Shown one piece after another: positions 1 through 33,500 of a stretch of DNA of 64,000 bases. The stretch comes from Glycera tridactyla (lineage: Eukaryota). Each line of letters starts with the position of its first letter. Within the stretch, counting starts at the first letter, position 1. The translations under genes were made by a program, and so were the position numbers. The notes under the pieces were generated by a model that made no database searches, had not been told where the DNA came from, and was given only the letters and a program-made list of their open reading frames with translations. The stretch spans positions 46,934,001 through 46,998,000 of the forward strand of contig OZ286471.1 in assembly GCA_965644265.1 (NCBI GenBank), in the 5' to 3' direction.

Positions 1-350
1 TTCTTCCCTCCTCTTCTAAACAGTATTTACTCACCCCTTCCTATTGATCTACAATATTTTGGAATTGGATACACTGTATCATCCAACAATATGTACTTCA
101 ATCTTGAGAAGCCATCTCGTATCTCCGCAATACTTCATGCTTCAAACAGACCGATTTTTTGGATTAGTTAAAGAATATTGTCCAAAACATATGTAGTTCT
201 GCCTTCTCGGAATTTCAGGCCATCAATAGCTCCTAACTCGCTCGATTATTCAGTTTCACTTTATACAGAAAATACTACTATCACAGATTGCATGGACTCT
301 ATTGCCATCGCCATGATATATTTCATGATTCCATTCACTGCATTTTCCAG

Positions 351-524
351 ATGGTTGCTATATACCTACAGTGGGTGGAACTGCCAATGGTGCTAGCTGT
401 GTCTTTCCATTTTTCTACGGAGGTGACAAATACTGGCAATGTACTGTCGTGAAGAACAACAATCAGGCATGGTGTTCTACAACTACCTTCTATGATGTTG
501 ACAAAAAATGGGGCAATTGTTTAG
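351..524 (+). CDS. FN2 exon, array unit 1
   Basis: 174 nt, ccag|...|gtaggc; DGCYIPTVGGTANGASCVFPFFYGGDKYWQCTVVKNNNQAWCSTTTFYDVDKKWGNCL. Confidence 0.9.
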
Positions 525-3500
525 GTAGGCAAGTTGGTAATAGACTGCTTGTTTTGTTGTGAACTCAACTTGTTTTCATGGATTTTCATTTCATACTGAT
601 TGTGCCATGAATATATTGAATTTGTGATGCACGTCAATCTTGACCTGAAGTTTGTGAGTTGATTCCGAAGATTCAGAGAGTATCTTCGAAGCAGTCCTGC
701 ATGGCACTGATAAGTAACTGAGATATCTGTAACCGGAACATTCTTACATCCGATTGTTGATTGTTACTCAATTCAACAGTGTGTGATTATGATATGTAGA
801 ATTTCGTTAAAGCAATTTACAACTGTCAAATTGAATTGCACATTCACCAATTGACTATTTCCTGCATACTGCCTGCTCTACATTTTCCTAGATCTCAAAT
901 GTGGCGAATCCACCCTTGTTGCATCAACATTAGTAACAGAGGCATCCTCATCGGCATCACCCAGGCCATCCATACTTCCCACACAGCAAGTCACTCTACC
1001 AGGTAATATACCTCTGGCAGCTATATCATGAAGTTTCTGGCCATTCTCTAAAGGCATTAGGTGATTTTATACGAATGCAAACCCATACTACATCTCTCAC
1101 AAAAAAGATTGCTTGTCGCTTCTGTAACTGCATGATCTGGAATTGCCATTTGGAGCCTGTTATCCAAAAATGCACTAGTTCATAAGTGATGGTTAATATC
1201 TCTGGAATGTCACTGAGGTGAATTGGTCACCAATAATGACCAATGTCTGTCTGTAATTGGTCGCATATTCTTCCCTCCTCTTCTAAACAGTATTTACTCA
1301 GCACTCCCTTTGATCTACAATATTTTGGAATTGGATACACTGTATCATCCAACATTATGTACTTCAATCTTGAGAAGCCATTTAGTATCTCCGCAATACT
1401 TCATGCTTCAAACAGACCGCTTTTTTGGATTAGTTGAAGAATATTGTCCAAAACATATGTAGTTCTCCCCTTTAGGAATTTCAGGCAATCAATTGCTCCT
1501 AACTCGCTCGATTTATCAGTTTCACTTTCTACAGAAAATACAACTCGCTCGATTTATCGGTTTCACTTTCTACAGAAAATACAACCATCACAGATTGCAT
1601 GGACTCCATTGCCATCTCCATGATATATTTCATGGGTTAAATCACTGCATTTTTCAGATGGTTGCTATATACCTACAGTGGGTGGAACTGCCAATGGTGC
1701 TAGCTGTGTCTTTCCATTTTTCTACGGAGGTGACAAATACTGGCAATGTACTGTCGTGAAGAACAACAACCGGGCATGGTGTTCTACAACTACCTTCTAT
1801 GATGTTGACAAAAGATGGGGCAATTGTTTAGGTAGGCAAGTTGGTAAAAGACTGCTAGGCTCGTTGTGAACTCAACTTGTTACTGTGAATTTTAATTTCA
1901 TGCTGAGTGTGCCATGAATGTATTGAGTTTGTGATGCACATATATCTGGACCTGAAGTTTGTGAGTTGATTCCGAACGTTCAGAGAGTATCTTTGAAGCA
2001 GTCCTGCATGGCACTGATGATTAACTGAGATAATGGAAATCGAAACATTCTCACATCCGATCGTTGATTGTTACTCGATTCAACAGTGTGTGATTATGAT
2101 ATGTAGAATCTCATTGAAGCAATTTGCAACTGTAAAATCGAATTGCACATTCACCAGTTGACCATTTCCTGCATACTGCATGCTCTACATTTTCCTAGAT
2201 CTCAAATGCAGCGAATCCACCCTTGTTGCATCAACATTAGTAACAGAGGCATCCTCATCGGCATCACCCAGGCCAACAATACTTCCAACACGGCAAGTCA
2301 CTCTACCAGGTAATATACCTCTGGCACCTATATCATGAAGTTTCTGGCCATTCTCACAAATGCATCAGGTGATAATATACGAACGCAAACCCATATTACA
2401 TCAGTCAAAAAACAGATTGTTCGCCTCTCCTGTGACTGCATGATCTGGAATTGCCATGTTGAGCCTGTTATCCAAAAATGCACTAGTTCATAAGTGAAGG
2501 CCAATGTCTCTCGAATGTCACTGAGGTGAATTGGTCACCAATGATGACCAATGTCTATGTGTAATTGGTCGCAGATTCTTCCCTCCTCTTCCAAACAGTA
2601 TTCACTCGGCACTCCCTTTGATCTACAACATTGTGGAATTGGATAAACTGTATCATCCAACATTATGCACTTCTATCTTGAAAAGCCATTTTGTATCTCC
2701 GCAATACTTCATGCTTCAAACAGACCGCTTTTTTGGATTGGTTAAAGAATATTGTCCAAAACATGTGTAGTTCTCCCTTCTCGGAATTTCAGGCAATCAA
2801 TAGCTCCTAACTCTCTCGATTTATCAGTTTCACTTTCTACAGAAAATACAACTTGCTCGATTTATCAGTTTCACTTTCTACAGAAAATACAACCATCACA
2901 GATTGCATGGACTCCATTGCCATCTCCATGATATATTTCATGGGTTAAATCACTGCATTTTTCAGATGGTTGCTATATACCTACAGTGGGTGGAACTGCC
3001 AATGGTGCTAGCTGTGTCTTTCCATTTTTCTATGGAGGTGACAAATACTGGCAATGTACTGTCGTGAAGAACAACAACCGGGCATGGTGTTCTACAACTA
3101 CCTTCTATGATGTTGACAAAAAGTGGGGCAATTGTTTAGGTAGGCAAGTTGGTAATAGACTGCTAGGTTCGTCGTGAACTCAACTTGTTACTGTGGATTC
3201 TAATTTCATGCTGAGTGTGCCATGAATATATTGAATTTGTGATGCACATATATCTGGACCTGAAGTTTGTGAGTTGATTCCGAAAGTTCAGAGAGTATCT
3301 TTGAAGCAGTCCTGCATGGCACTGATGATTAACTGAGATAATGGTAACCGAAACATTCTCACATCCGATCGTTGATTGTTACTCGATTCAACAGTGTGTG
3401 ATTATGATATGTAGAATCTCATTGAAGCAATTTGCAACTGTAAAATTGAATTGCACATTCACCAGTTGACCATTTCCTGCATACTGCATGCTCTACATTT

Positions 3501-6500
3501 TCCTAGATCTCAAATGCAGCGAATCCACCCTTGTTGCATCAATATTAGTAACAGAGGCATCCTCATCGGCATCACTCAGGCCAACCATACTTCCAACACA
3601 GCAAGTCACTCTACCAGGTAATATACCTCTGGCAGCTATATCATGAAGTTTCTGGCCATTCTCTAAAGGCATTAGGTGATTTTATACAAATGCAAACCCA
3701 TACTACATCTGTCACAAAAAAGATTGCTTGTCGCTTCTGTAACTGCATGATCTGGAATTGCCATTTGGAGCCTGTTGTCAAAAAATGCACTAGTTCATAA
3801 GTGATGGTTAATATCTCTGGAATGTCACTGAGGTGAATTGGTCACCAATAATGACCAATGTCTGTCTGTAATTGGTCGCATATTCTTCCCTCCTCTTCCA
3901 AACAGTATTCACTCAGCACTCCCTTTGATCTACAATATTTTGGAATTGGATACACTGTATCATCCAACAATATGTACTTCAATCTTGAGAAGCCATTTAG
4001 TATCTCCGCAATACTTCATGCTTCAAACAGACCACTTTTTTGGATTAGTTAAAGAATATTGTCCGAAACATGTGTAGTTCTCCCTTCTCGGAATTTCAGG
4101 CAATCAATAGCTCCTAACTCGCTCGATTTATCAGTTTCACTTTCTACAGAAAATACAACCATCACAGATTGCATGGACTCCATTGCCATCTCCATGATAT
4201 ATTTCATGGGTTCATTCACTACATTTTCCAGATGGTTGCTATATACCTACAGTGGGTGGAACTGCCAATGGTGCTAGCTGTGTCTTTCCATTTTTCTACG
4301 GAGGTGACAAATACTGGCAATGTACTGTCGTGAAGAACAACAACCGGGCATGGTGTTCTACAACTACCTTCTATGATGTTGACAAAAGATGGGGCAATTG
4401 TTTAGGTAGGCAAGTTGGTAAAAGACTGCTAGGCTCGTTGTGAACTCAACTTGTTACTGTGAATTTTAATTTCATGCTGAGTGTTCCATGAATATATTGA
4501 GTTTGTGATGCACATATATCTGGACCTGAAGTTTGTGAGTTGATTCCGAAAGTTCAGAGAGTATCTTTGAAGCAGTCCTGCATGGCACTGATAAGTAACT
4601 GAGATAATGGTAACCGAAACATTCTTACATCCGATCATTGATTGTTACTCAATTCAACAGTGTGTGGTTATGATATGTAGAATCTCATTGAAGCAATTTG
4701 CAACTGTAAAATTGAATCGCACATTCACAAGTTGACCATTTCCTGCATACTGCATGCTCTACATTTTCCTAGATCTCAAATGCAGCGAATCCACCCTTGT
4801 TGCATCAACATTAGTAACAGAGGCATCCTCATCGGCATCACCCAGGCCAACCATACTTCCAACACAGCAAGTCACTCTACCAGGTAATATACCTCTGGCA
4901 CCTATATCATAAAGTTTCTGGCCATTCTCACAAATGCATCAGGTGATAATATACGAACGCAAACCCATATTACATCAGTCAAAAAACAGCTTGTTTGCCC
5001 CTCCTGTGACTGCATGATCTGGAATTGCCATGTTGAGCCTGTTATCCAAAAATGCACTAGTTCATAAGTGATAGTCAATGTCTCTTGAATGTCACTGAGG
5101 TGAATTGGTCACCAATGATGACCAATGTCCATGTGTAATTGGTCGCAGATTCTTCCCTCCTCTTCCAAACAGTATTCACTCGGCACTCCCTTTGATCTAC
5201 AACATTGTGGAATTGGATAAACTGTATCATCCAACATTATGCACTTCTATCTTGGAAAGCCATTTTGTATCTCCGCAATACTTCATGCTTCAAACAGACC
5301 GCTTTTTTGGATTGGTTAAAGAATATTGTCCAAAACATGTGTAGTTCTCCCTTCTCGGAATTTCAGGCAATCAATAGCTCCTAACTTGCTCGATTTATCA
5401 GTTTCACTTTCTACAGAAAATACAACTCGCTCGATTTATCAGTTTCACTTTCTACAGAAAATACAACCATCACAGATTGCATGGACTCCTTTGCCATCTC
5501 CATGATATATTTCATGGGTTAAATCACTGCATTTTTCAGATGGTTGCTATATACCTACAGTGGGTGGAACTGCCAATGGTGCTAGCTGTGTCTTTCCATT
5601 TTTCTATGGAGGTGACAAATACTGGCAATGTACTGTCGTGAAGAACAACAACCGGGCATGGTGTTCTACAACTACCTTCTATGATGTTGACAAAAAATGG
5701 GGCAATTGTTTAGGTAGGCAAGTTGGTAATAGACTGCTAGGTTCGTCGTGAACTCAACTTGTTACTGTGGATTCTAATTTCATGCTGAGTGTGCCATGAA
5801 TATATTGAATTTGTGATGCACATATATCTGGACCTGAAGTTTGTGAGTTGATTCCGAAAGTTCAGAGAGTATCTTTGAAGCAGTCCTGCATGGCACTGAT
5901 GATTAACTGAGATAATGGTAACCGAAACATTCTCACATCCGATCGTTGATTGTTACTCGATTCAACAGTGTGTGATTATGATATGTAGAATCTCATTGAA
6001 GCAATTTGCAACTGTAAAATTGAATTGCACATTCACCAGTTGACCATTTCCTGCATACTGCATGCTCTACATTTTCCTAGATCTCAAATGCAGCGAATCC
6101 ACCCTTGTTGCATCAACATTAGTAACAGAGGCATCCTCATCGGCATCACCCAGGCCAACCATACTTCCAACACAGCAAGTCACTCTACCAGGTAATATAC
6201 CTCTGGCAGCTATATCATAAAGTTTCTGGCCTTTCTCAAAAGGCATTAGGTGATTTTATACGAATGCAAACCCATACTACATCTCTCACAAAAAAGATTG
6301 CTTGTCGCTTCTGTAACTGCATGATCTGGAATTGCCATTAGGAGCCTGTTGTCCAAAAATGCACTAGTTCATAAGTGATGGTTAATATCTCTGGAATGTC
6401 ACTGAGGTGAATTGGTCACCAATAATGACCAATGTCTGTCTGTAATTGGTCGCAGATTCTTCCCTCCTCTTCCAAACAGTATTCACTCAGCACTCCCTTT

Positions 6501-9500
6501 GATCTACAATATTTTGGAATTGGATACACTGTATCATCCAACAATATGTACTTCAATCTTGAGAAGCCATTTAGTATCTCCGCAATACTTCATGCTTCAA
6601 ACAGACCACTTTTATGGATTAGTTAAAGAATATTGTCCGAAACATGTGTAGTTCTCCCTTCTCGGAATTTCAGGCAATCAATAGCTCCTAACTCGCTCGA
6701 TTTATCAGTTTCACTTTCTACAGAAAATACCACCATCACAGATTGCATGGACTCCATTGCCATCTCCATGATGTATTTCATGGGTTCATTCACTACATTT
6801 TCCAGATGGTTGCTATATACCTACAGTGGGTGGAACTGCCAATGGTGCTAGCTGTGTCTTTCCATTTTTCTACGGAGGTGACAAATACTGGCAATGTACT
6901 GTCGTGAAGAACAACAACCGGGCATGGTGTTCTACAACTACCTTCTATGATGTTGACAAAAGATGGGGCAATTGTTTAGGTAGGCAAGTTGGTAAAAGAC
7001 TGCTAGGCTCGTTGTGAACTCAACTTGTTACTGTGAATTTTAATTTCATGCTGAGTGTTCCATGAATGTATTGAGTTTGTGATGCACATATATCTGGACC
7101 TGAAGTTTGTGAGTTGATTCCGAAAGTTCAGAGAGTATCTTTGAAGCAGTCCTGCATGGCACTGATAAGTAACTGAGATAATGGTAACCGAAACATTCTT
7201 ACATCCGATCATTGATTGTTACTCAATTCAACAGTGTGTGGTTATGATATGTAGAATCTCATTGAAGCAATTCGCAACTGTAAAATTGAATCGCACATTC
7301 ACCAATTGACCATTTTCTGCATACTGTCTGCTCTACATTTTCCTAGATCTCAAATGCAGCGAATCCACCCTTGTTGCATCAACATTAGTAACAGAGGCAT
7401 CCGCATCGACATCACCCAGGCCAACCATACTTCCAACACAGCAAGTCACTCTACCAGGTAATATACCTCTGGCACCTATATCATGAAGTTTCTGGCCATT
7501 CTCACAAATGCATCAGGTGATAATATACGAACGCAAACCCATATTACATCAGTCAAAAAACAGATTGTTTGCCCCTCCTGTGACTGCATGATCTGGAATT
7601 GCCATGTTGAGCCTGTTATCCAAAAATGAACTAGTTCATAAGTGATAGTCAATGTCTCTGGAATGTCACTGAGGTGAATTGGTCACCAATGATGACCAAT
7701 GTCTATGTGTAATTGGTCGCAGATTCTTCCCTCCTCTTCCGAACAGTATTCACCCGGCACTCCCTTTGATCTACAACATTGTGGAATTGGATAAACTGTA
7801 TCATCCAACAATATGTACTTCAATCTTGAGAAGCCATTTAGTATCTCCGCAATACTTCATGCTTCAAACAGACCACTTTTATGGATTAGTTAAAGAATAT
7901 TGTCCGAAACATGTGTAGTTCTCCCTTCTCGGAATTTCAGGCAATCAATAGCTCCTAACTCGCTCGATTTATCAGTTTCACTTTCTACAGAAAATACCAC
8001 CATCACAGATTGCATGGACTCCATTGCCATCTCCATGATGTATTTCATGGGTTCATTCACTACATTTTCCAGATGGTTGCTATATACCTACAGTGGGTGG
8101 AACTGCCAATGGTGCTAGCTGTGTCTTTCCATTTTTCTACGGAGGTGACAAATACTGGCAATGTACTGTCGTGAAGAACAACAACCGGGCATGGTGTTCT
8201 ACAACTACCTTCTATGATGTTGACAAAAGATGGGGCAATTGTTTAGGTAGGCAAGTTGGTAAAAGACTGCTAGGCTCGTTGTGAACTCAACTTGTTACTG
8301 TGGATTTTAATTTCATGCTGAGTGTTCCATGAATGTATTGAGTTTTTGATGCACATATATCTGGACCTGAAGTTTGTGAGTTGATTCCGAAAGTTCAGAG
8401 AGTATCTTTGAAGCAGTCCTGCATGGCACTGATAAGTAACTGAGATAATGGTAACCGAAACATTCTTACATCCGATCATTGATTGTTACTCAATTCAACA
8501 GTGTGTGGTTATGATATGTAGAATCTCATTGAAGCAATTCGCAACTGTAAAATTGAATCGCACATTCACCAATTGACCATTTTCTGCATACTGTCTGCTC
8601 TACATTTTCCTAGATCTCAAATGCAGCGAATCCACCCTTGTTGCATCAACATTAGTAACAGAGGCATCCGCATCGACATCACCCAGGCCAACCATACTTC
8701 CAACACAGCAAGTCACTCTACCAGGTAATATACCTCTGGCACCTATATCATGAAGTTTCTGGCCATTCTCACAAATGCATCAGGTGATAATATACGAACG
8801 CAAACCCATATTACATCAGTCAAAAAACAGATTGTTTGCCCCTCCTGTGACTGCATGATCTGGAATTGCCATGTTGAGCCTGTTATCCAAAAATGAACTA
8901 GTTCATAAGTGATAGTCAATGTCTCTGGAATGTCACTGAGGTGAATTGGTCACCAATGATGACCAATGTCTATGTGTAATTGGTCGCAGATTCTTCCCTC
9001 CTCTTCCGAACAGTATTCACCCGGCACTCCCTTTGATCTACAACATTGTGGAATTGGATAAACTGTATCATCCAACATTATGCACTTCTATCTTGGAAAG
9101 CCATTTTGTATCTCCGCAATACTTCATGCTTCAAACAGACCACCTTTTTGGATTGGTTAAAGAATATTGTCCAAAACATGTGTAGTTCTCCCTTCTCGGA
9201 ATTTCAGGCAATCAATAGCTCCTAACTCGCTCAATTTATCAGTTCCACTTTCTACAGAAAATACAACTCGCTCGATTTATCAGTTTCACTTTCTACAGAA
9301 AATACAACCATCACAGATTGCATGGACTCCAATGCCATCTCCATGATATATTTCATGGGTTAAATCACTGCATTTTTCAGATGGTTGCTATATACCTACA
9401 GTGGGTGGAACTGCCAATGGTGCTAGCTGTGTCTTTCCATTTTTCTACGGAGGTGACAAATACTGGCAATGTACTGTCGTGAAGAACAACAACCGGGCAT

Positions 9501-15500: not shown

Positions 15501-18500
15501 TCAATCTTGAAAAGCCATTGAGATTCTTCGCAATACTTCATGCTTCAAACAGACCGCTTTTTTGGATTGGTTAAAGAATATTGTCCAAAACATATGTAGT
15601 TCTCCCCTTTAGGAATTTCAGGCAATCAATTGCTCCTAACTCGCTCGATTTATCAGTTTCACTTTCTACAGAAAATACAACCATCACAGATTGCATGGAC
15701 TCCATTGCCTTATCCATGATATATTTCATGGGTTTATTCACTGCATTTTCCAGATGGTTGCTATATACCTACAGTGGGTGGAACTGCCAATGGTGCTAGC
15801 TGTGTCTTTCCATTTTTCTACGGAGGTGACAAATACTGGCAATGTACTGTCGTGAAGAACAATAACCGGGCATGGTGTTCTACAACTACCTTCTATGATG
15901 TTGACAAAAAATGGGGCAATTGTTTAGGTAGGCAAGTTGGTAATAGTGTAATCCTTCCAATATGACAATGGAATTAAACCAGTCATCCGACAGGCTTGTA
16001 GGAGTATTCCCTCCTCTTCCTTAAGATGCAACCTTGGCAAGAAGCTTATATCTGATTAAATTACCATTATCAAGAACAGCAGGAAGCAATGTAAAGGTTA
16101 ACCGGGCTTTTACCCCATTTATCCCAATGTCAAAATAAATGGCATTGCTCCTGTGGATCGATGTTCACAAAAATATATACGTTGTACTAAAAGATGTTAA
16201 AATGCGCGATCAGTATCACATGTTGAATCCCATTGTTTGCCAGCTCTAATGAAACCATAATTCTATAAAGACATCTCTTTCATCACACAGGGAACTCAAT
16301 TGTTGGTTCAAAAGTATAAGATGACACATAAATAGAGTTGTAGATACATATTTTAATTTGTATAAGTTCACATAGTAGGTAGGTTGTAAATGATAGATCA
16401 TAAATTGAATGAAGCAAAATAGATTATCACGGTATCAATTAGACAAAAAGTCAGTTATACTCATGATGCAATAAATAAATTCATTTCAAACATTCAGATC
16501 TGAATCATATACATATATGACAAGTATGGATGAACTCGTGTTACATAAATACCAGTGATATATCAGAATTATTCAACTCACGACATACACATACACAGGA
16601 TATTCATGTCTAAATGACAAAGTGAGGTACCTCAATGAGTTATACAAGTACACACTCAAATAGTCACAAAATTGAGCTCAAACCCTTTTATAGTACTATC
16701 TTCTTTCTTGTTCCATCGTTGACTTGGGCGCTTGAGAAGTGGCCACTGCAGCTAGCTAGAAATATAAACAAAGTCAAAGACACTGTGTCTAGATAGTTAG
16801 TGCACTTTAGATATATGACTTTAAAAGTTTGGGTTAAAGACCCACGATGCAAGACCGACTTTAAAAGTTAATATAGTGGTGGCCACCTAGTTGCACATGT
16901 GATGACGAACTTTGGTTATATATCCATATCAGCTAGAGAATGATGGTAGCTGATACTAGAACGCGTATCATTGATGGAAGTAGAAGTAAAGAGGAGACAT
17001 CATTCCTCTCGAGTGAAGTAGCTTATCTCGTAAAGATAGCTAACAGCATCTCACCGTGTGAAGAGATTATGTCCTACACATCTCCCATGTGTATAGTGCG
17101 TTTAACACACTAAGGAATATGTAGATGACGGCTAGGCATATCCGCCTATATTAGTAGATTCCCATAAGCCTGGGAGGCGACGTGGGAATGGAGTGGCCTG
17201 AAGAGTACGCACCTCTTCGATTTTACGACATCTCAGACGCGCTGGTCGCTGCAAGAAGATAAAAAAAAGTCTCCTACCAACTTGTCCAAGTATCATAAAG
17301 AAAAGTTTTAATTCAAAAAGTATCTTTAAACAACTCTAAGTTTTATTTATGTTTGTTGCGTGCACTTAGTTACTTGCAGTTGCCAGATCTATTATAGTGG
17401 GAAGGCAGGATCCCACTCTATTCCCCACTAACTAAATAGCATAAGAATTTAACTTACAAGTTACCATTTATCGAGTTACTAGAAATATTTCAACATTCAG
17501 TTGAAGAGATTGTCAAAAGACAATCAGCAAGTATCACCGTTGAAAAGAAATCTCAATGCACTTAAGCCATTATCAACGGAGCAGGCACTGAGCCAACTAA
17601 GTTAACCAATCAATGAACAAGGCATTAAAATATCATCAGCTGTATCAGAGAGAGCTAAGTTCACGGGGAATGAACTAGAAAGGTGAAAACACCAAGTCCT
17701 CTCTCAGTCAGCTGGGATCATGATGCAGCAGCAATACAGCGAAAAAGTTGAAGTCCAACTGTCTGCATGAAAAGAGCAAGCACGCTTTTCAAAATCAAAA
17801 ATAGTTAAGTCCTCATCAAATCAAATTCAAAAATTTGAATAAATTCTAAGTTAAGAATCCAAGATAGAGAAATCAATCTATTCAGAACAGGTGGTCTTTG
17901 TAGACAGTATCAGATAAAGTCACCACTCACCGAAGCAAGAGGCAAGATCTGAAATCAACCCAAGTTCCCCCTCCCTTACACTGTGAGTATGACCTACCTA
18001 ACATAGACCGGAACGAACTAAGTCACAGCTGCAACAGCAGCGGGGTCTAAGTTCCGATCTACCAAGTCCGTGCTAAGTTCGAATTCTAAAATTCACCAAA
18101 TCCCAATTTCAACTCATTTCAAGCCATTTGGTAATGTCTAAAGTCGAAATTAGTCATGTAATTCCAGAAATATAAGAGCGAAATGCATTTACATGCAGTC
18201 CCATATGTCACAAACCTCAAACACAAATGTGCTTACTAGGTAAGACCATGAGTAAGTCCGGTAAGCATCGTGCTGAGTTTCAGTCAACGCGCTAAGTCCG
18301 CGCTGTCAAATCACAAATAGCGCTAAAGCCAGCACACTGAAGTTCTACAAAAGCAATCCGCACATAACGAGAAACAGTTCCGATCAATTCTAAAGCATCT
18401 AAAAGCTTTTATCCAAAAGTGATAAAGTTTCAAACTTGTTGAAAAGTGTAAAGTGGATCGGAGGCTCAAAGTGAGGCTCATACATGTGGCGGATGGAAAT

Positions 18501-21500: not shown

Positions 21501-24500
21501 CATCAACATTAGTAACAGAGGCATCCTCATCGGCATCACCCAGGCCAACCATACTTCCAACACAGCAAGTCACTCTACCAGGTAATATGCCTCTGGCACC
21601 TATATCATGAAATTTCTGGACATTCTCACAAATGCATCAGGTGATAATATACGAACGCAAACCCATATCACATCAGTCAAAAAACAGATTGTTTGCCCCT
21701 CCTGTGACTGCATGATCTGGAATTGCCATGTGGAGCCTGTTATCCAAAAATGCACTAGTTCATAAGTGATAGTCAATGTCTCTGGAATGTCACTGAGGCG
21801 AATTGGTCACCAATAATGACCAATGTCTATCTGTAATTGGTCGCATATTCTTCCCTCCTCTTCCAAACAGTATTTACTCAGCACTCCCTTTGATCTACAA
21901 TATTTTGGATTTGGATACACTGTATCATCCAACAATATGTACTTCAATCTTGAGAAGCCATTTAGTATCTCCGCAATACTTCATGCTTCAAACAGACCGC
22001 TTTTTTGGATTAGTTAAAGAATATTGTCCAAAACATATGTAGTTCTCCCCTTTAGGAATTTCAGGCAATCAATTGCTCCTAACTCGCTCGATTTATCAGT
22101 TTCACTTTCTACAGAAAATACAACCATCACAGATTGCATGGACTCCATTGCCTTATCCATGATATATTTCATGGGTTTATTCACTGCATTTTCCAGATGG
22201 TTGCTATATACCTACAGTGGGTGGAACTGCCAATGGTGCTAGCTGTGTCTTTCCATTTTTCTACGGAGGTGACAAATACTGGCAATGTACTGTCGTGAAG
22301 AACAACAACCGGGCATGGTGTTCTACAACTACCTTCTATGATGTTGACAAAAAATGGGGCAATTGTTTAGGTAGGCAAGTTGGTAATAGACTGCTTGTTT
22401 TGTTGTGAACTCAACTTGTTACTGTGAATTTGAATTTCATGCTGAGTGTTCCATGAATATATTGAGTTTGTGATGCACATATATCTGGACCTGAAGTTTG
22501 TGAGTTGATTCCGAAAGTTCAGAGAGTATCTTTGAAGCAGTCCTGCATGGCACTGATAAGTAACTGAGATAATGGTAACCAAAACATTCTTACATCCGAT
22601 CATTGATTGTTACTCAATGCAACAGTGTGTGGTTATGATATGTAGAATCTCATTGAAGCAATTTGCAACTGTAAAATTGAATTGCACATTCACCAATTGA
22701 CCATTTTCTGCATACTGCCTGCTCTACATTTTCCTAGATCTCAAATGCAGCGAATCCACCCTTGTTGCATCAACATTAGTAACAGAGGCATCCTCATCGG
22801 CATCACCCAGGCCAACCATACTTCCAACACAGCAAGTCACTCTACCAGGTAATATGCCTCTGGCACCTATATCATGAAATTTCTGGACATTCTCACAAAT
22901 GCATCAGGTGATAATATACGAACGCAAACCCATATCACATCAGTCAAAAAACAGATTGTTTGCCCCTCCTGTGACTGCATGATCTGGAATTGCCATGTGG
23001 AGCCTGTTATCCAAAAATGCACTAGTTCATAAGTGATAGTCAATGTCTCTGGAATGTCACTGAGGCGAATTGGTCACCAATAATGACCAATGTCTATCTG
23101 TAATTGGTCGCATATTCTTCCCTCCTCTTCCAAACAGTATTTACTCAGCACTCCCTTTGATCTACAATATTTTGGATTTGGATACACTGTATCATCCAAC
23201 AATATGTACTTCAATCTTGAGAAGCCATTTAGTATCTCCGCAATACTTCATGCTTCAAACAGACCGCTTTTTTGGATTAGTTAAAGAATATTGTCCAAAA
23301 CATATGTAGTTCTCCCCTTTAGGAATTTCAGGCAATCAATTGTTCCTAACTCACTCGATTTATCAGTTTCGGTTTCTACAGCAAATACAACCATCACAGA
23401 TTGCGTGGACTCCATTGCCTTATCCATGATATATTTCATGGGTTAAATCACTGCATTTTTCAGATGGTTGCTATATACCTACAGTGGGTGGAACTGCCAA
23501 TGGTGCTAGCTGTGTCTTTCCATTTTTCTACGGAGGTGACAAATACTGGCAATGTACTGTCGTGAAGAACAACAACCGGGCATGGTGTTCTACAACTACC
23601 TTCTATGATGTTGACAAAAAATGGGGCAATTGTTTAGGTAGGCAAGTTGGTAATAGACTGCTTGGTTCGTCGTGAACTCAACTTGTTACTGTGAATTTTA
23701 ATTTCATGCTGAGTGTTCCATGAATATATTGAGTTTGTGATGCACATATATCTGGACCTGAAGTTTGTGAGTTGATTCCGAACGTTCAGAGAGTATCTTT
23801 GAAGCAGTCCTGCATGGCACTGATAAGTAACTGAGATAATGGTAACCGAAACATTCTCACATCCGATCGTTGATTGTTACTCGATTCAACAGTGTGTGAT
23901 TATGATATGTAGAATCTCATTGAAGCAATTTGCAACTGTAAAATTTAATTGCACATTCACCAGTTGACCATTTCCTGCATACTGCATGCTCTACATTTTC
24001 CTAGATCTCAAATGCAGCGAATCCACCCTTGTTGCATCAACATTAGTAACAGAGGCATCCTCATCGGCATCCCCCAGGCCAACCATACTTCCAACACAGC
24101 AAGTCACTCTACCAGGTAATATACCTCTGGCAGCTATATCATGAAGTTTCTGGCCATTCTCTAACGGCATTAGGTGATTTTATACGAATGCAAACCCATA
24201 CTACATCTGTCACAAAAAAAATTGTTTGTCGCTTCTGTGACTGCATGATCGGGAATTGCCATTTGGAGCCTGTTATCCGAAAATGCACTAGTTCATAAGT
24301 GATAGTCAATGTCTCTGGAATGTCACTGAGGCGAATTGGTCACCAATGATGACCAATGTCTATGTGTAATTGGTCGCAGATTCTTCCCTCCTCTTCCAAA
24401 CAGTATTCACTCAGCACTCCCTTTGATCTACAACATTGTGGAATTGGATAAACTGTATCATCCAACATTATGCACTTCTATCTTGAAAAGCCATTTTGTA

Positions 24501-27500
24501 TCTCCGCAATACTTCATGCTTCAAACAGACTGCTTTTTTGGATTGGTTAAAGAATATTGTACAAAACATGTGTAGTTCTCCCTTCTCGGAATTTCAGGCA
24601 ATCAATAGCTCCTAACTCGCTCGATTTATCAGTTTCACTTTCTACAGAAAATACAACTCGCTCGATTTATCAGTTTCACTTTCTACAGAAAATACAACCA
24701 TCACAGATTGCATGGACTCCATTGCCATCTCCATGATATATTTCATGGGTTCATTCACTACATTTTCCAGATGGTTGCTATATACCTACAGTGGGTGGAA
24801 CTGCTAATGGTGCTAGCTGTGTCTTTCCATTTTTCTACGGAGGTGACAAATACTGGCAATGTACTGTCGTGAAGAACAACAACCGGGCATGGTGTTCTAC
24901 AACTAGCTTCTATGATGTTGACAAAAGATGGGGCAATTGTTTAGGTAGGCAAGTTGGTAATAGACTGCTAGGTTCGTCGTGAACTCAACTTGTTACTGTG
25001 AATTTGAATTTCATGCTGAGTGTGCCATGAATATATTGAATTTGTGATGCACATATATCTGGACCTGAAGTTTGTGAGTTGATTCTGAACGTTCAGAGAG
25101 TATCTTTGAAGCAGTCCTGCATGGCACTGATGATTAACTGAGATAATGGTAACCGAAACATTCTCACATCCGATCGTTGATTGTTACTCGATTCAACAGT
25201 GTGTGATTATGATATGTAGAATCTCATTGAAGCAATTTGCAACTGTAAAATTGAATTGCACATTCACCAGTTGACCATTTCCTGCATACTGCCTGCTCTA
25301 CATTTTCCTAGATCTCAAATGCAGCGAATCCACCCTTGTTGCATCAACATTAGTAACAGAGGCATCCTCATCGGCATCACCCAGGCCAACTATACTTCCA
25401 ACACAGCAAGTCACTCTACCAGGTAAAAAGCCTCTGGCACCTATATCATGAAGTTTCTGGCCATTTTCTAACGGCATTAGGTGATTTTATACGAATGCAA
25501 ACCCATACTAAGTGATGGTTAATATCTCTGGAATGTCACTGAGGTGAATTGGTCACCAATAATGACCATGTCTGTCTGTAATTGGTCGCATATTCTTCCC
25601 TCCTCTTCCAAACAGTATTTACTCAGCACTCCCTTTGATCTACAATATTTTGGAATTGGATACACTGTATCATCCAACAATATGTACTTCAATCTTGAGA
25701 AGCCATTTAGTATCTCCGCAATACTTCATGCTTCAAACAGACCGCTTTTTTTGATTAGTTAAAGAATATTGTCCAAAACATATGTAGTGTTCCTATTTAG
25801 GAATTTCAGGCAATCAATTGCTCCTAACTCGCTCGATTTATCAGTTTCGGTTTCTACAGCAAATACAACCATCACAGATTGCGTGGACTCCATTGCCTTA
25901 TCCATGATATATTTCATGGGTTTATTCACTGCATTTTCCAGATGGTTGCTATATACCTACAGTGGGTGGAACTGCCAATGGTGCTAGCTGTGTCTTTCCA
26001 TTTTTCTACGGAGGTGACAAATACTGGCAATGTACTGTCGTGAAGAACAACAACCGGGCATGGTGTTCTACAACTACCTTCTATGATGTTGACAAAAAAT
26101 GGGGCAATTGTTTAGGTAGGCAAGTTGGTAAAAGACTGCTAGGTTCGTTGTGAACTCAGCTTGTTATTGTGGATTCTAATTTCATGCTGAGTGTGCTATG
26201 AATATATTGAATTCGTGATGCACATATATCTGGACCTGAAGTTTGTGAGTTGATTCCGAAAGTTCAGAGAGTATCTTTGAAGCAGTCCTGCATGGCACTG
26301 ATGAGTAACTGAGATAATGGTAACCGAAACATTCTCACATCCGATCGTTGATTGTTACTAGATTCAACAGTGTGTGATCATGATATGTAGAATCTCATTG
26401 AAGCAATTTGCAACTGTAAAATTGAATTGCACATTCACCAGTTGACCATTTCCTGCATACTGCATGCTCTACATTTTCCTAGATCTCAAATGCAGCGAAT
26501 CCACCCTTGTTGCATCAACATTAGTAACAGAGGCATCCTCATCGGCATCCCCCAGGCCAACCATACTTCCAACACAGCAAGTCACTCTACCAGGTAATAT
26601 GCCTCTGGCACCTATATCATGAAGTTTCTGGACATTCTCACAAATGCATCAGGTGATAATATACGAACGCAAACCCATATCACATCAGTCAAAGAAAAAG
26701 ATTGTTTGCTGCTCCTGTGACTGCATGATCTGGAATTGCCATGTGGAGCCTATTATCCAAAAATGCACTAGTTCATAAGTGATGGTAAATGTCTCTGGAA
26801 TGTCACTGAGGCGAATTGGTCACCAATACTGACCAATGTCTGTCTGTATATGGTTGCAGCTTCTTCCCTCCTCTTCCAAACAGTATTCACTCAGCACTCC
26901 CTCTGATCTACAACATTGTGGAATTGGATAAACTGTATCATCCAACATTATGCACTTCAATCTTGAAAAGCCATTCAGATTCTCCGCAATACTTCATGCT
27001 TCAAACAGACCACTTTTTTGGATTGGATAAAGAATATTGTCCAAAACATGTGTAGTTCTCCCTTCTCGGAATTTCAGGCAATCAATAGCTCCTAACTCGC
27101 TCGATTTATCAGTTTCACTTTCTACAGAAAATACAACCATCACAGATTGCATGGACTCCATTGCCATCTCCATGATATATTTCATGGGTTCATTCACTAC
27201 ATTTTCCAGATGGTTGCTATATACCTACAGTGGGTGGAACTGCCAATGGTGCTAGCTGTGTCTTTCCATTTTTCTACGGAGGTGACAAATACTGGCAATG
27301 TACTGTCGTGAAGAACAACAACCGGGCATGGTGTTCTACAACTACCTTCTATGATGTTGACAAAAAATGGGGCAATTGTTTAGGTAGGCAAGTTGGTAAT
27401 AGACTGCTTGGTTCGTCGTGAACTCAACTTGTTACTGTGAATTTTAATTTCATGCTGAGTGTTCCATGAATATATTGAGTTTGTGATGCACATATATCTG

Positions 27501-30500
27501 GACCTGAAGTTTGTGAGTTGATTCCGAACGTTCAGAGAGTATCTTTGAAGCAGTCCTGCATGGCACTGATGATTAACTGAGATAATGGTAACCGAAACAT
27601 TCTCACATCCGATCGTTGATTGTTACTCGATTCAACAGTGTGTGATTATGATATGTAGAATCTCATTGAAGCAATTTGCGACTGTAAAATTTAATTGCAC
27701 ATTCACCAGTTGACCATTTCCTGCATACTGCATGCTCTACATTTTCCTAGATCTCAAATGCAGCGAATCCACCCTTGTTGCATCAACATTAGTAACAGAG
27801 GCATCCTCATCGGCATCCCCCAGGCCAACCATACTTCCAACACAGCAAGTCACTCTACCAGGTAATATACCTCTGGCAGCTATATCATGAAGTTTCTGGC
27901 CATTCTCTAACGGCATTAGGTGATTTTATACGAATGCAAACCCATACTACATCTGTCACAAAAAAAATTGTTTGTCGCTTCTGTGACTGCATGATCGGGA
28001 ATTGCCATTTGGAGCCTGTTATCCGAAAATGCACTAGTTCATAAGTGATAGTCAATGTCTCTGGAATGTCACTGAGGCGAATTGGTCACCAATGATGACC
28101 AATGTCTATCTGTAATTGGTCGCAGATTCTTCCCTCCTCTTCCAAACAGTATTCACTCGGCACTCCCTTTGATCTACAACATTGTGGAATTGGATAAACT
28201 GTATCATCCAACATTATGCACTTCTATCTTGAAAAGCCATTTTGTATCTCCGCAATACTTCATGCTTCAAACAGACTGCTTTTTTGGATTGGTTAAAGAA
28301 TATTGTACAAAACATGTGTAGTTCTCCCTTCTCGGAATTTCAGGCAATCAATAGCTCCTAACTCGCTCGATTTATCAGTTTCACTTTTTACAGAAAATAC
28401 AACCATCACAGATTGCATGGACTCCATTGCCATCTCCATGATATATTTCATGGGTTCATTCACTACATTTTCCAGATGGTTGCTATATACCTACAGTGGG
28501 TGGAACTGCCAATGGTGCTAGCTGTGTCTTTCCATTTTTCTACGGAGGTGACAAATACTGGCAATGTACTGTCGTGAAGAACAACAACCGGGCATGGTGT
28601 TCTACAACTACCTTCTATGATGTTGACGAAAGATGGGGCAATTGTTTAGGTAGGCAAGTTGGTAATAGACTGCTAGGCTCGTTGTGAACTCAACTTGTTA
28701 CTGCGAATTTTGATTTCATGCTGAGTGTTCCATGAATATATTGAGTTTGTGATGCACATATATCTGGACCTGAAGTTTGTGAGTTGATTCCGAACGTTCA
28801 GAGAGTATCTTTGAAGTAGTCCTGCATGGCACTGATAAGTAACTGAGATAATGGTAACCGAAACATTCTTACATCAGATCGTTGATTGTTACTCAATTCA
28901 ACAGTGTGTGATTATGATATGTAGAATCTCATTGAAGCAATTTGCAACTGTAAAATTGAATCGCACATTCACCAATTGACCATTTTCTGCATACTGCCTG
29001 CTCTACATTTTCCTAGATCTCAAATGCAGCGAATCCACCCTTGTTGCATCAACATTAGTAACAGAGGCATCCTCATCGGCATCACCCAGGCCAACTATAC
29101 TTCCAACACAGCAAGTCACTCTACCAGGTAATATACCTCTGGCACCTATATCATGAAGTTTCTGGCCATTAACGGCATTAGGTGATTTTATACGAATGCA
29201 AACCCATACTACATCTGTCACAAAAAAGATTGTTTTTTTCGCTTCTGTGACTGCATGATCTGGAATTGCCATGTGGAGCCTGTTATCCAAAATGCACTAG
29301 TTCATAAGTGATGGTTAATATCTCTGGAATGTCACTGAGGTGAATTGGTCACCAATAATGACCAATGTCTGTCTGTAATTGATTGCATATTCTTCCCTCC
29401 TCTTCCAAACAGTATTTACTCAGCACTCCCTTTGATCTACAATATTTTGGAATTGGATACACTGTATCATCCAACAATATGTACTTCAATCTTGAGAAGC
29501 CATTTAGTATCTCCGCAATACTTCATACTTCAAACAGACCACTTTTTTGGATTAGTTAAAGAATATTGTCCAAAACATATGTAGTTCTCCCCTTTAGGAA
29601 TTTCAGGCAATCAACTGCTCCTAACTCGCTCGATTTATAAATTTCACTTTCTACAGAAAATACAACCATCACAGATTGCGTGGACTCCATTGCCATATCC
29701 ATGATATATTTCATGGGTTCATTCACTGCATTTTCCAGATGGTTGCTATATACCTACAGTGGGTGGAACTGCCAATGGTGCTAGCTGTGTCTTTCCATTT
29801 TTCTACGGAGGTGACAAATACTGGCAATGTACTGTCGTGAAGAACAACAACCGGGCATGGTGTTCTACAACTACCTTCTATGATGTTGACAAAAAATGGG
29901 GCAATTGTTTAGGTAGGCAAGTTGGTAATAGACTGCTAGGCTCGTTGTGAACTCAACTTGTTACTGTGAATTTTAATTTCATGCTGAGTGTTCCATGAAT
30001 ATATTGAGTTTGTGATGCACATATATCTGGACCTGAAGTTTGTGAGTTGATTCTGAACGTTCAGAGAGTATCTTTGAAGCAGTCCTACATGGCACTGATA
30101 AGTAACTGAGATAATGGTAACCGAAACATTCTTACATCCGATCGTTGATTGTTACTCAATTCAACAGTGTGCGATTATGATATGTAAAATCTCATTGAAG
30201 CAATTTGCAACTGTGAAATTGAATTGCACATTCACCAGTTGACCATTTCCTGCATACTGCCTGCTCTACATTTTCTTAGATCTCAAATGCAGCGAATCCA
30301 CCCTCGTTGCATCAACATTAGTAACAGAGGCATCCTCATCGGCATCACCCAGGCCAACCATACTTCCAACACAGCAAGTCACTCTACCAGGTAATATACC
30401 TCTGGCACCTATATCATGAAGTTTCTGGCCATTCTCACAAGTGCATCAGGTGATAATATACGAACGCAAACCCATATTACATCAGTCAAAAAAAAGATTG

Positions 30501-33500
30501 TTTGCCCCTCCTGTGACTGCATGATCTGGAATTGCCATGTGGAGGCTGTTATCCAAAAATGCACTAGTTCATGAGTGATAGTCAATTTCTCTGGAATGTC
30601 ACTGAGGCGAATTGGTCACCAATGATGACCAATGTCTATCTGTAATTGGTCGCAGATTCTTCCCTCCTCTTCCAAACAGCATTTACTCAGCACTCCCTTT
30701 GATCTACAACATTGTGGAATTGGATAAACTGTATCATCCAACATTATGCACTTCAATCTTGAAAAGCCATTTTGTATCTCCGAAATACTTCATGCTTCAA
30801 ACAGACCGCTTTTTTGGATTGGTTAAAGAATATTGTCCAAAACATATGTAGTTCTCCCATCTTGGAATTTCAGGCAATCAATAGCTCCTAACCCGCTTGA
30901 TTCATCAGTTTAACTTTCTACAGAAAATACAACCATCACAGATTGCATGGACTCCATTGCCATCTCCATGATATATTTCATGGGTTCATTCACTGCATTT
31001 TTCAGATGGTTGCTATATACCTACAGTGGGTGGAACTGCCAATGGTGCTAGCTGTGTCTTTCCATTTTTCTACGGAGGTGACAAATACTGGCAATGTACT
31101 GTCGTGAAGAACAACAACCGGGCATGGTGTTCTACAACTACCTTCTATGATGTTGACAAAAAATGGGGCAATTGTTTAGGTAGGCAAGTTGGTAATAGAC
31201 TGCTAGGTTCGTTGTGAACTCAACTTGTTACTGTGGATTCTAATTTCATGCTGAGTGTGCCATGAATATATTGAGTTTGTGATGCACATATATCTGGACC
31301 TGAAGTTTGTGAGTTGATTCCGAAAGTTCAGAGAGTATCTTTGAAGCAGTCCTGCATGGCACTGATAAGTAACTGAGATAATGGTAACCGAAACATTCTT
31401 ACATCCGATCATTGATTGTTACTCAATTCAACAGTGTGTGGTTATGATATGTAGAATCTCATTGAAGCAATTTGCAACTGTAAAATTGGATCGCACATTC
31501 ATCAATTGACCATTTTCTGCATACTGCCTGCTCTACATTTTCCTAGATCTCAAATGCAGCGAATCCACCCTTGTTGCATCAACATTAGTAACAGAGGCAT
31601 CCTCATCGGCATCCCCCAGGCCAACCATACTTCCAACACAGCAAGTCACTCTACCAGGTAATATACCTCTGGCACCTATATCATGAAGTTTCTGGCCATT
31701 CTCACAAATGCATCAGTTGATAATATACAAATGCAAACCCATATTACATCAGTCAAAAAAAAGATTGTTTGCTGCTCCTATGACTGCATGATCTTGAATT
31801 GCCGTGTGGTTACATAATACCGTCCTTTTCATATGTAGTTCATATGTAGTTCATAAATGGCATGCACATGTAAGCAGGGCAGGCAGATTTTCCAGAGGGG
31901 CATTTGGATTTCCATGATGTCTTCTCGCCCTGGTGAGGTGATGAATTTTAGGGCTAGCTCTCTCAAACTTTGTGTTCCCACTCTCTTGGGCCATGGATTC
32001 ACGGCTGTCGAATGGTTTCCAGACAATAAATTTGTGAGTTTCAGCGCTAGCCTTCTCAATCTTGGTGTACAGCCTTTTATAGACTATGCCAACACACCCA
32101 TTGATTTTTCAGTGGCTATCTTCAATTTCAAGGTCACTGAATGCAAAAAGGTCAAAAGAGTTTCTTGACAATCACCTCATAAATTACAGAGGTGGCTTTC
32201 GCAAACTTGGTGTACAGACATTCCCAGGCTATTGCTAGATTTTGGGGTTGCCATCTCAACTTTCAAGGTCATTGAGTGTGAACATGTATTACTTTTGTTC
32301 ATATATTTCACTTTTCTCATTTACTCTTCCTGTGACAAGCAAACACTCAGCACGGGGCAATCACACCCATTGAGTGCATCCACAGGCTAGTGGTGATACA
32401 CCAGCATTTTGATGACAGTGCCAAAAGGTCAAAAGTCAAGGTCACAGGAGCTATTTTCAGAATTTAATATTTTTCACTATAATTTGACTAAACATCAATC
32501 AGTATGTAGAAATCTCACTTGGTGAATTTTTCTAGTTTCCTAGGTCACCATGACCTGATCAAAGGCTTCCCTTGTCAGCAAGATTCCAGTCAAACTGCTG
32601 ACCCAAATTCAACTGAACGTCTCTGATGCTTGGGCATATTCTCGAGGACAAGTCCTACCCTAGGAGACCCCCCCCCCCCCCGGATCACAGTACACCTCAT
32701 ACCCCAGGACACATTGTCATACTTATGATTAGGTATTCTACATCATTGGTCACTCAAAGGATAATCGGCAACCAATAATGTCTAGTTCATCAGTGAGCAT
32801 GCTCACTCGAAGATGAATAAACAAGCAGGTGGGAAGCCAGACAGGCATGCAGGTAGTAAATAATAACACATCTGGGGGAGACATATTGAGTGAGGAGGTG
32901 CCTCACTAAAATTCTAGTTGCATACTTCATTGCCATTTCCGATATATATTCTTGATGGGTTCATCTATGCATTTCCAGATGGTTGTTATATACCTACAGT
33001 GGGCGGAAATGCCGATGGTGCTCGCTGTGTCTTCCCATTCTTTTACCGCGGTGACAAATACTGGCAATGTACTGTCATAAAGAACGACAACAAGGCATGG
33101 TGTTCTACAACTAGCTTCTATGATGTTGACAAACGATGGGGCAATTGTTTAGGTAGGCAAGATAATGATAAACTGCTTATCACTTTGTGAATTCAATTGG
33201 TTGAAATTAATTTTCATCTCATATTGAATGCCTGAAGAATTGAATGGAAAGCCATTACTACCTGACGTTCATGGGATGATATTGAATATTGAGAGAATCT
33301 GGAATGAACAACTTAAACCAATCTGCCTTAGATCATGAATTTTCATCCAATGATAATAAATGCACATCATGAGATTATTGGCAGATTGTTTTGAATGTAT
33401 TGTGCATGCTACTTTATAGCTGGGTGAGAACTACTTTTTGACCATTCCGTCCCTAATCCACGTGATTAAAGCAAGAATATATGGCCGTGAGGTAAAATGC

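Follow-up and report, generated by a model that had tools for sequence, protein, structure and literature searches.

Coding macro-repeats, in which whole exons are repeated in tandem, are rare, and assemblies usually miss or collapse them. In humans their effects are strong, LPA having a link to cardiovascular risk and DMBT1 to mucosal defence. Mucin variable number tandem repeats (VNTRs) are short repeats within one large exon. The kringle IV-2 (KIV-2) unit of LPA contains two exons of 160 and 182 bp within 5.5 kb and is present in 1 to >40 copies (PMC4378929), and DMBT1 is subject to single- and multi-unit copy-number variations (CNVs), with 7−20 SRCR domains per allele (PMC4851238). Here we analyze a stretch of 64,000 nucleotides from Glycera tridactyla (assembly GCA_965644265.1, contig OZ286471.1, positions 46,934,001 to 46,998,000, forward strand), in which a gene for fibronectin type II (FN2) modules carries a coding array of two-exon units. 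We refer to this stretch as the window and use its coordinates throughout, with negative numbers for positions upstream of it. The explanation that we favor, and in which we place good confidence as a whole, is that the repeats seen here are the 3′ half of an ∼73-kb intragenic tandem array in the gene for a giant, probably secreted glycoprotein.

In a k-mer distance spectrum of the window, the peaks lie at 1267, 1266, 1308, and 2574 bp, the last being the period that results from the alternation of 1267- and 1308-bp units, and a 1.3-kb unit used as a BLAST query tiles positions 1−15946 and 21118−31809 head to tail with 91−100% identity. These two approaches were used instead of Tandem Repeats Finder, the longest period of which is 500, making it blind to the array. 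The original prediction had placed at least 21 tandem units, each adding 95 residues, at positions 1−31809, and most of that description is borne out. The window contains 21 FN2 exons and 21 linker exons, all open and with AG/GT splice sites, and the 174 nt of the FN2 exon (exon A), with its acceptor taken from spliced contigs, together with the 111 nt of the linker exon (exon B) give 285 nt, or 95 amino acids. The 3′ end of the predicted span also stands, but its start at position 1 does not, as the array reaches 41.5 kb further upstream. Its full extent was read from 100 kb upstream and 80 kb downstream of the window (244 kb read in all). The unit family runs from approximately −41580 (C32:46892420) to 31809, ∼73 kb including an insertion, in units of 1.25−1.31 kb. 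It comprises 54 intact exon pairs and codes for ∼5,100 residues: 46 pairs are young units located from −31315 to 31006, 21 of them inside the window, and the other 8 are older, 7 at the 5′ edge with 92−94% identity in exon A and 1 at the 3′ edge. There are no runs of N inside the young array; those at 35005−35195, 43769−43903, and 57045−57189 fall in the diverged part of the gene.

To count units across the 2.04-Gb assembly we relied on an exact-pattern search, since the whole-genome DNA search skips very common words and is therefore unsuited to counting. The unspliced boundary between exon B and intron 2 returned 47 exact matches, all of them on the + strand at C32:46,893,505-46,965,673 and none elsewhere. 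That 47 of 47 matches fall at one place indicates that the array is a single locus with no haplotig.

Each unit pairs a folded module with a Ser/Thr/Pro-rich spacer, and every intron of the array is phase 1. Exon A contains the whole FN2 domain together with one extra Cys on the N-terminal side, and exon B encodes a closing Cys (in DLKC) followed by a linker of 33 residues, 39% of them Ser/Thr (n = 13) and 12% Pro (n = 4), such that the unit protein reads D-G-C-YIPT..., the four-Cys FN2 core, ...GNCL-D-L-K-C, and the linker. Exon A matches Pfam fn2 (PF00040) with 55−56 bits against a cutoff of 22.2 (E = 4e-15) over profile positions 1−42 of 42. The four core Cys and the aromatics (C-x-FPF ... 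C ... WC ... YD ... WG-x-C) are present and invariant in 54 of 54 units, and both extra cysteines are likewise invariant in all units; we propose that these two form a third, outer disulfide, the sixth Cys of which lies in exon B. The best solved relatives are the gelatin- and collagen-binding FN2 modules of MMP-2 (E = 2e-30 over three modules; domain E = 1e-12 for its third module), MMP-9, and fibronectin. The FN2 pattern of the unit aligns residue by residue with the MMP-2 and MMP-9 modules, and in the third MMP-2 module, aligned over residues 5−56, the four core Cys and the aromatic pocket residues are conserved. Unlike MMP-2, MMP-9, and fibronectin, which have 2−3 FN2 modules, the array has 54, with at least 136 in the 244 kb; its modules also differ in having two extra Cys each and a C2−C3 loop that is one residue shorter. 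A look-up in the ESM Atlas returned generic FN2 clusters only.

Contigs of four public runs were matched to 6,000 letters of the window. One run, X1, is low-coverage DNA, and two, X2 and X3, provided spliced contigs. Contig 9 of X2 (254 nt) joins 29127 to 29739 across GT..AG, skipping 611 nt, and contig 16 of X3 (315 nt) reads B|A|B, with 30390|29739, then exon A at 29739−29912, and then 29912|29017. Each spliced contig spans only 2−3 consecutive exons, and no intron pieces of the array are present in the X2 or X3 contigs. A spliced junction 30-mer has 0 matches in the 2.04-Gb assembly at up to 2 mismatches, whereas the unspliced boundary is found 47 times, from which it follows that the contigs derive from RNA and not from a retrocopy. 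The array exons are transcribed and are spliced as predicted. A shorter exon A of 153 nt, beginning after the proximal AG and giving 88 residues per unit, was considered and rejected because both spliced contigs use the AG located 21 nt upstream. The inner AG is itself a feature of the units: it lies in frame 21 nt inside every exon A (e.g., 29758−29759) and is conserved in all units. Splicing at this site would shorten the unit by seven residues (GCYIPTV), the first extra cysteine among them; the two spliced contigs both show the upstream acceptor alone.

Comparison of the young units with one another shows where change has been tolerated. Over full-length alignments of 45 young units, the mean pairwise identity is 94.3% (range 90.8−100%). 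Pairwise diversity is 1.44% in exon A and 2.69% in exon B, compared with 7.0% and 6.8% in introns 1 and 2, and variable sites number 41 of 285 in exons vs 341 of 982 in introns. All 26 indel events fall in introns (P ∼ 0.0013 if placed at random), and both exons are open, exactly 285 nt together, and bounded by AG/GT in 46 of 46 young units. Codon statistics on the joined exon pairs give a ratio of nonsynonymous to synonymous diversity (pN/pS) of 0.32, with pS = 4.0%. Purifying selection holds the exons while the introns drift, which speaks strongly for the units as functional coding sequence.

The history of the array can be followed in the unit-by-unit identity matrix, which we used after a self-megablast for long blocks returned almost nothing. 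The matrix is a mosaic in which runs of units with at least 98% identity recur at offsets of 1, 2, 3, 5, and 10 units. The clearest case is a 3-unit block of ∼3.74 kb that is repeated between −31315 and −22560 at 98.2, 99.8, 100, and 98.8% identity. One unit pair is 100% identical, and most pairs differ by 1−9%. The array grew by many independent single- and multi-unit duplications, some of them very recent; block duplications at several offsets and with up to 100% identity show repeated unequal exchange. Older, more diverged units stand at both edges of the array. Arrays under unequal exchange typically keep their oldest units at the edges, since the edges escape homogenization. No long colinear diagonal at a large offset is seen in the matrix, which argues that two haplotypes have not been concatenated.

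The old 5′ part also contains rearranged pieces. At L004:5919-6065 (−34081 to −33935), a deletion has brought the start of one exon B up against the middle of one exon A, leaving a 147-nt exon that is in frame and bounded by AG/GT; it would encode an FN2 module that lacks the first two cysteines. Exon fragments without splice sites are located at −41357 and −32553. Downstream of the array, the gene holds further intragenic block duplications of three FN2 exons each (57195−61000 vs 61040−64860 and 48281−50935 vs 51437−54053). One pair among them is 93% identical over 3.6 kb; the older pair is 76−84% identical, yet its FN2 cores are identical at the protein level. A linker exon of the exon B type at 45391−45570 (D-VVC-GES...VTLP, phase 1-1) carries a perfect 60-bp (20-residue) tandem duplication at 45408−45530, indicating that repeat growth also occurs inside linker exons.

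How closely does this locus resemble the described systems? The original prediction had termed it apolipoprotein(a)-like and near-identical even in introns. The second of these is too strong, as the introns differ by ∼7% and the exons by 1.4−2.7%; KIV-2 copies are almost identical, introns included, whereas the array units are 91−100% alike (mean 94%) and only some block pairs reach 99−100%. The first is sound as far as the layout is concerned. As in LPA KIV-2, tens of two-exon units are arranged head to tail in frame, each supplying a small disulfide-rich module and a linker, here rich in Ser, Thr, and Pro, and the units are spliced in series. The comparison does not carry over to the homogeneity of the units or to the domain itself, which is fn2 with no kringle match in Pfam, and the gene shows no plasminogen-type protease, so that the array falls outside the apolipoprotein(a)/plasminogen family. 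The likeness to KIV-2 is in our view a fair analogy and not a case of membership. FN2 and kringle, both class 1-1 modules, are grouped in one "kringle-like" fold class. Further differences from LPA concern the size of the unit (1.27 kb vs 5.5 kb for KIV-2) and its exon structure, with FN2 in one exon and the last Cys in the next, where the kringle is split mid-domain. The array is also the most recent layer in a gene of already >130 FN2 modules, and polymorphism, which is known for KIV-2, is here inferred.

DMBT1, with its SRCR and SID exons, appears to be at least as close an analogy as KIV-2. As in human DMBT1 (gp340 / salivary agglutinin), domains alternate with Ser/Thr/Pro-rich spacers (SID) in a regular tandem array, apparently as part of a large secreted glycoprotein, and single-unit and multi-unit block duplications are mixed within the array. 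The two differ in the domain (FN2 and not SRCR) and in number (∼54 units here vs 13 in DMBT1); CNV has been demonstrated and bacteria are known as the ligand for DMBT1, whereas a varying unit number and a collagen- or gelatin-like ligand are predicted here. Mucin-type VNTRs such as the PTS repeats of MUC1 and MUC2 offer a looser parallel, in that Ser/Thr/Pro-rich repeated spacers would set the length of a secreted glycoprotein. Unlike them, the array has a genomic unit of 1.27 kb that contains two exons, two introns, and a folded domain.

If the array were real and expressed but its copy number effectively fixed, it would be an old, selected, and diverged structure and no VNTR in the population. 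A mean unit identity of only 94.3%, a 7% difference between introns, and the old, diverged FN2 exons that make up the rest of the gene are what such a reading would lead one to see. We nevertheless consider it unlikely: block pairs that are 99−100% identical occur in different registers, so duplication continued until recently, and X1, an independent sample, has a unit variant that is missing from the assembly. This variant, an intron deletion of 15 nt that no unit of the assembly shows, implies that array content differs between samples, although it is not a measurement of copy number. X1 furthermore assembles unit introns at a word depth of 7−28 while the single-copy flank is without coverage, a pattern that fits a multi-copy array in the X1 sample, depth being a weak measure. 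The same observation bears on the possibility that the array is an artefact, over-expanded in assembly or made of two haplotypes joined in tandem. Tandem arrays are error-prone in assemblies, and the 100% identical unit pair could be taken as a sign of such an error, but the units are individually distinguishable and mostly 1−9% apart, the matrix has no large-offset colinear diagonal, the array has no N runs, and the assembly contains no second copy or haplotig elsewhere. With multi-copy depth in X1 added to these points, an artefact seems to us very improbable.

We think it just as improbable that most of the repeat exons are decaying pseudo-exons left out of the mature mRNA. The damaged pieces at the older 5′ edge, namely, the B/A fusion at L004:5919-6065 and the fragments that lack splice sites, are of the kind that decay would produce. 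All 46 young units, however, keep both exons open at 285 nt with AG/GT, pN/pS is 0.32 with no exonic indels, and spliced B|A|B contigs are seen at a word depth ∼15-fold that of neighboring single-copy exons, depth again being a weak measure. Because of the recent block duplications, we lean toward a copy number that varies between individuals, and instability of the array is plausible given the mosaic that these duplications form. A more tentative suggestion is that alleles with very different unit numbers, by tens of units and thousands of residues, segregate and alter the valency or size of a giant mucus or cuticle protein that binds collagen or matrix. Several points weigh against the favored explanation. 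The data are assembled contigs and one haplotype, from which variation in copy number is inferred; the ∼6% mean difference between units lowers the rate of unequal exchange relative to LPA KIV-2; the runs that supply the RNA evidence are only guessed to be RNA; and their two short contigs, of 254 and 315 nt, cannot place all 54 units in one transcript.

The host gene is probably that of a giant, secreted, beads-on-a-string glycoprotein of an invertebrate animal. At least 136 FN2 cores lie in the 244 kb that were read, from −99270 to +90217 and without exception on the + strand. Because every intron has phase 1, the reading frame would survive when misaligned homologous recombination adds or removes whole units, and each such unit would change the protein by 95 residues and one putative FN2 binding site. 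The linkers may be O-glycosylated, and the FN2 beads, judging from their homology to the modules of MMP-2, MMP-9, and fibronectin, may bind a collagen- or gelatin-like ligand multivalently. The array could in this way adjust how long, and how multivalent, a protein of the matrix, mucus, or cuticle is. It lengthens by ∼5,000 residues a protein that may be the largest FN2 protein yet seen; our literature search found no described giant or repeat-array FN2 protein, which is no proof that none exists. Resolved at ∼54 units, the array shows every stage of such a structure, from diverged edges to a younger, block-duplicated core with selected exons and drifting introns. If unit number does vary, the locus would offer a tractable model for the tuning of valency in a matrix or mucus protein. 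With length polymorphism, it would stand as a parallel to LPA and DMBT1 in an invertebrate, made from kringle-like FN2 modules, and as a natural system for the expansion of an exon-pair array within a gene of >130 modules.

The insertion that interrupts the array at 15947−21117 (+ strand) is a solo long terminal repeat (LTR) of a giant-LTR retrotransposon, judging from its LTR-type ends, its target-site duplication, and the direct pairs found elsewhere. It is 5171−5172 bp long with TG..(A)CA ends, is flanked by a target-site duplication of AATAG or ATAG at 15942−15946 and 21118−22, and lies within intron 1 of unit 13; no internal repeat was found inside it. Many contigs carry full-length copies of the same LTR with 98−99% identity, and the copies often come in pairs on one strand, 11,828 bp apart (at least 11 such pairs, with a few at 12.6−13.4 kb), a spacing that implies elements of ∼17 kb. 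The family, with >7,000 first-look candidates and unusually long LTRs, looks very recently active. As a recent insertion, the solo LTR can serve as an internal landmark of the array. A second class of repeat, interspersed and of very high copy number, is located at 31810−32917 and 33400−33600. Contig word depth at this repeat reaches ∼15,000 in 4 of 4 public runs, and it is seen even in a run labeled as a third organism. Its occurrence at 31810−32917 marks the 3′ edge of the young array, where the repeat or repeats displace the middle of intron 2 of the last unit, whose homology returns at 32918.

The in-window part of the array (1−31809, + strand) opens with the intron 2 tail of one unit (1−350), which is followed by 21 complete exon pairs, all on the + strand with AG/GT, an open frame, and phase 1-1. 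The positions of these units, each taken from the start of exon A to the end of exon B, are as follows: unit 1, 351−1002 (exon A 351−524, exon B 892−1002); unit 2, 1658−2309 (1658−1831, 2199−2309); unit 3, 2966−3617 (2966−3139, 3507−3617); unit 4, 4232−4883 (4232−4405, 4773−4883); unit 5, 5540−6191 (5540−5713, 6081−6191); unit 6, 6806−7457 (6806−6979, 7347−7457); unit 7, 8073−8724 (8073−8246, 8614−8724); unit 8, 9381−10032 (9381−9554, 9922−10032); unit 9, 10647−11298 (10647−10820, 11188−11298); unit 10, 11955−12606 (11955−12128, 12496−12606); unit 11, 13221−13872 (13221−13394, 13762−13872); and unit 12, 14488−15139 (14488−14661, 15029−15139). Unit 13, which holds the solo LTR, extends over 15754−21581 (15754−15927, 21471−21581). 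It is followed by unit 14, 22197−22848 (22197−22370, 22738−22848); unit 15, 23464−24115 (23464−23637, 24005−24115); and unit 16, 24771−25422 (24771−24944, 25312−25422), which is short (1171 bp) because of an ∼96-bp deletion in intron 2. The remaining units are unit 17, 25942−26593 (25942−26115, 26483−26593); unit 18, 27210−27861 (27210−27383, 27751−27861); unit 19, 28476−29127 (28476−28649, 29017−29127), the donor of which at 29127 is seen spliced; unit 20, 29739−30390 (29739−29912, 30280−30390), with exon A spliced at both ends in the X2 and X3 contigs; and unit 21, 31006−31657 (31006−31179, 31547−31657), the last young unit, with unit homology ending at 31809. Beyond the interspersed repeat, an older flanking member of the family at 32979−33152 (+ strand) has an open exon A with AG/GT and 89.7% identity, and 25 further diverged FN2 exons of the same gene are located at 33883−63326 (+ strand), some with linker exons of their own, e.g., that at 45391−45570.

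After the last FN2 exon (90095−90217, with a phase-1 donor), ∼19 PAN/Apple-domain exons follow on the same strand (Pfam PAN_1, E = 1e-7 to 1e-4). They include L013:8943-9266, L014:1937-2284, L015:29-337, L016:8580-8942, and L017:8035-8304, within coordinates 92943−132304. Two of them, read base by base, are phase 1-1 and have Thr/Pro-rich tails. The PAN exons are probably the C-terminal part of the FN2 gene, and a gene that combines FN2 and PAN would loosely echo plasminogen and HGF, FN2 being kringle-like.

FN2 is massively expanded elsewhere in the genome as well, with at least 1,038 first-look candidates in several clusters, including C42:45.55-46.01 Mb, C42:72.98-73.42 Mb, C39:76.7 and 80.7 Mb, and C28:32.7-33.1 Mb. 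Other regularly spaced FN2 arrays exist, for example one with a spacing of ∼2.3 kb at C42:45.65-45.69 Mb, and at C42:73,181,984-73,183,071 FN2 cores lie only ∼160 bp apart.

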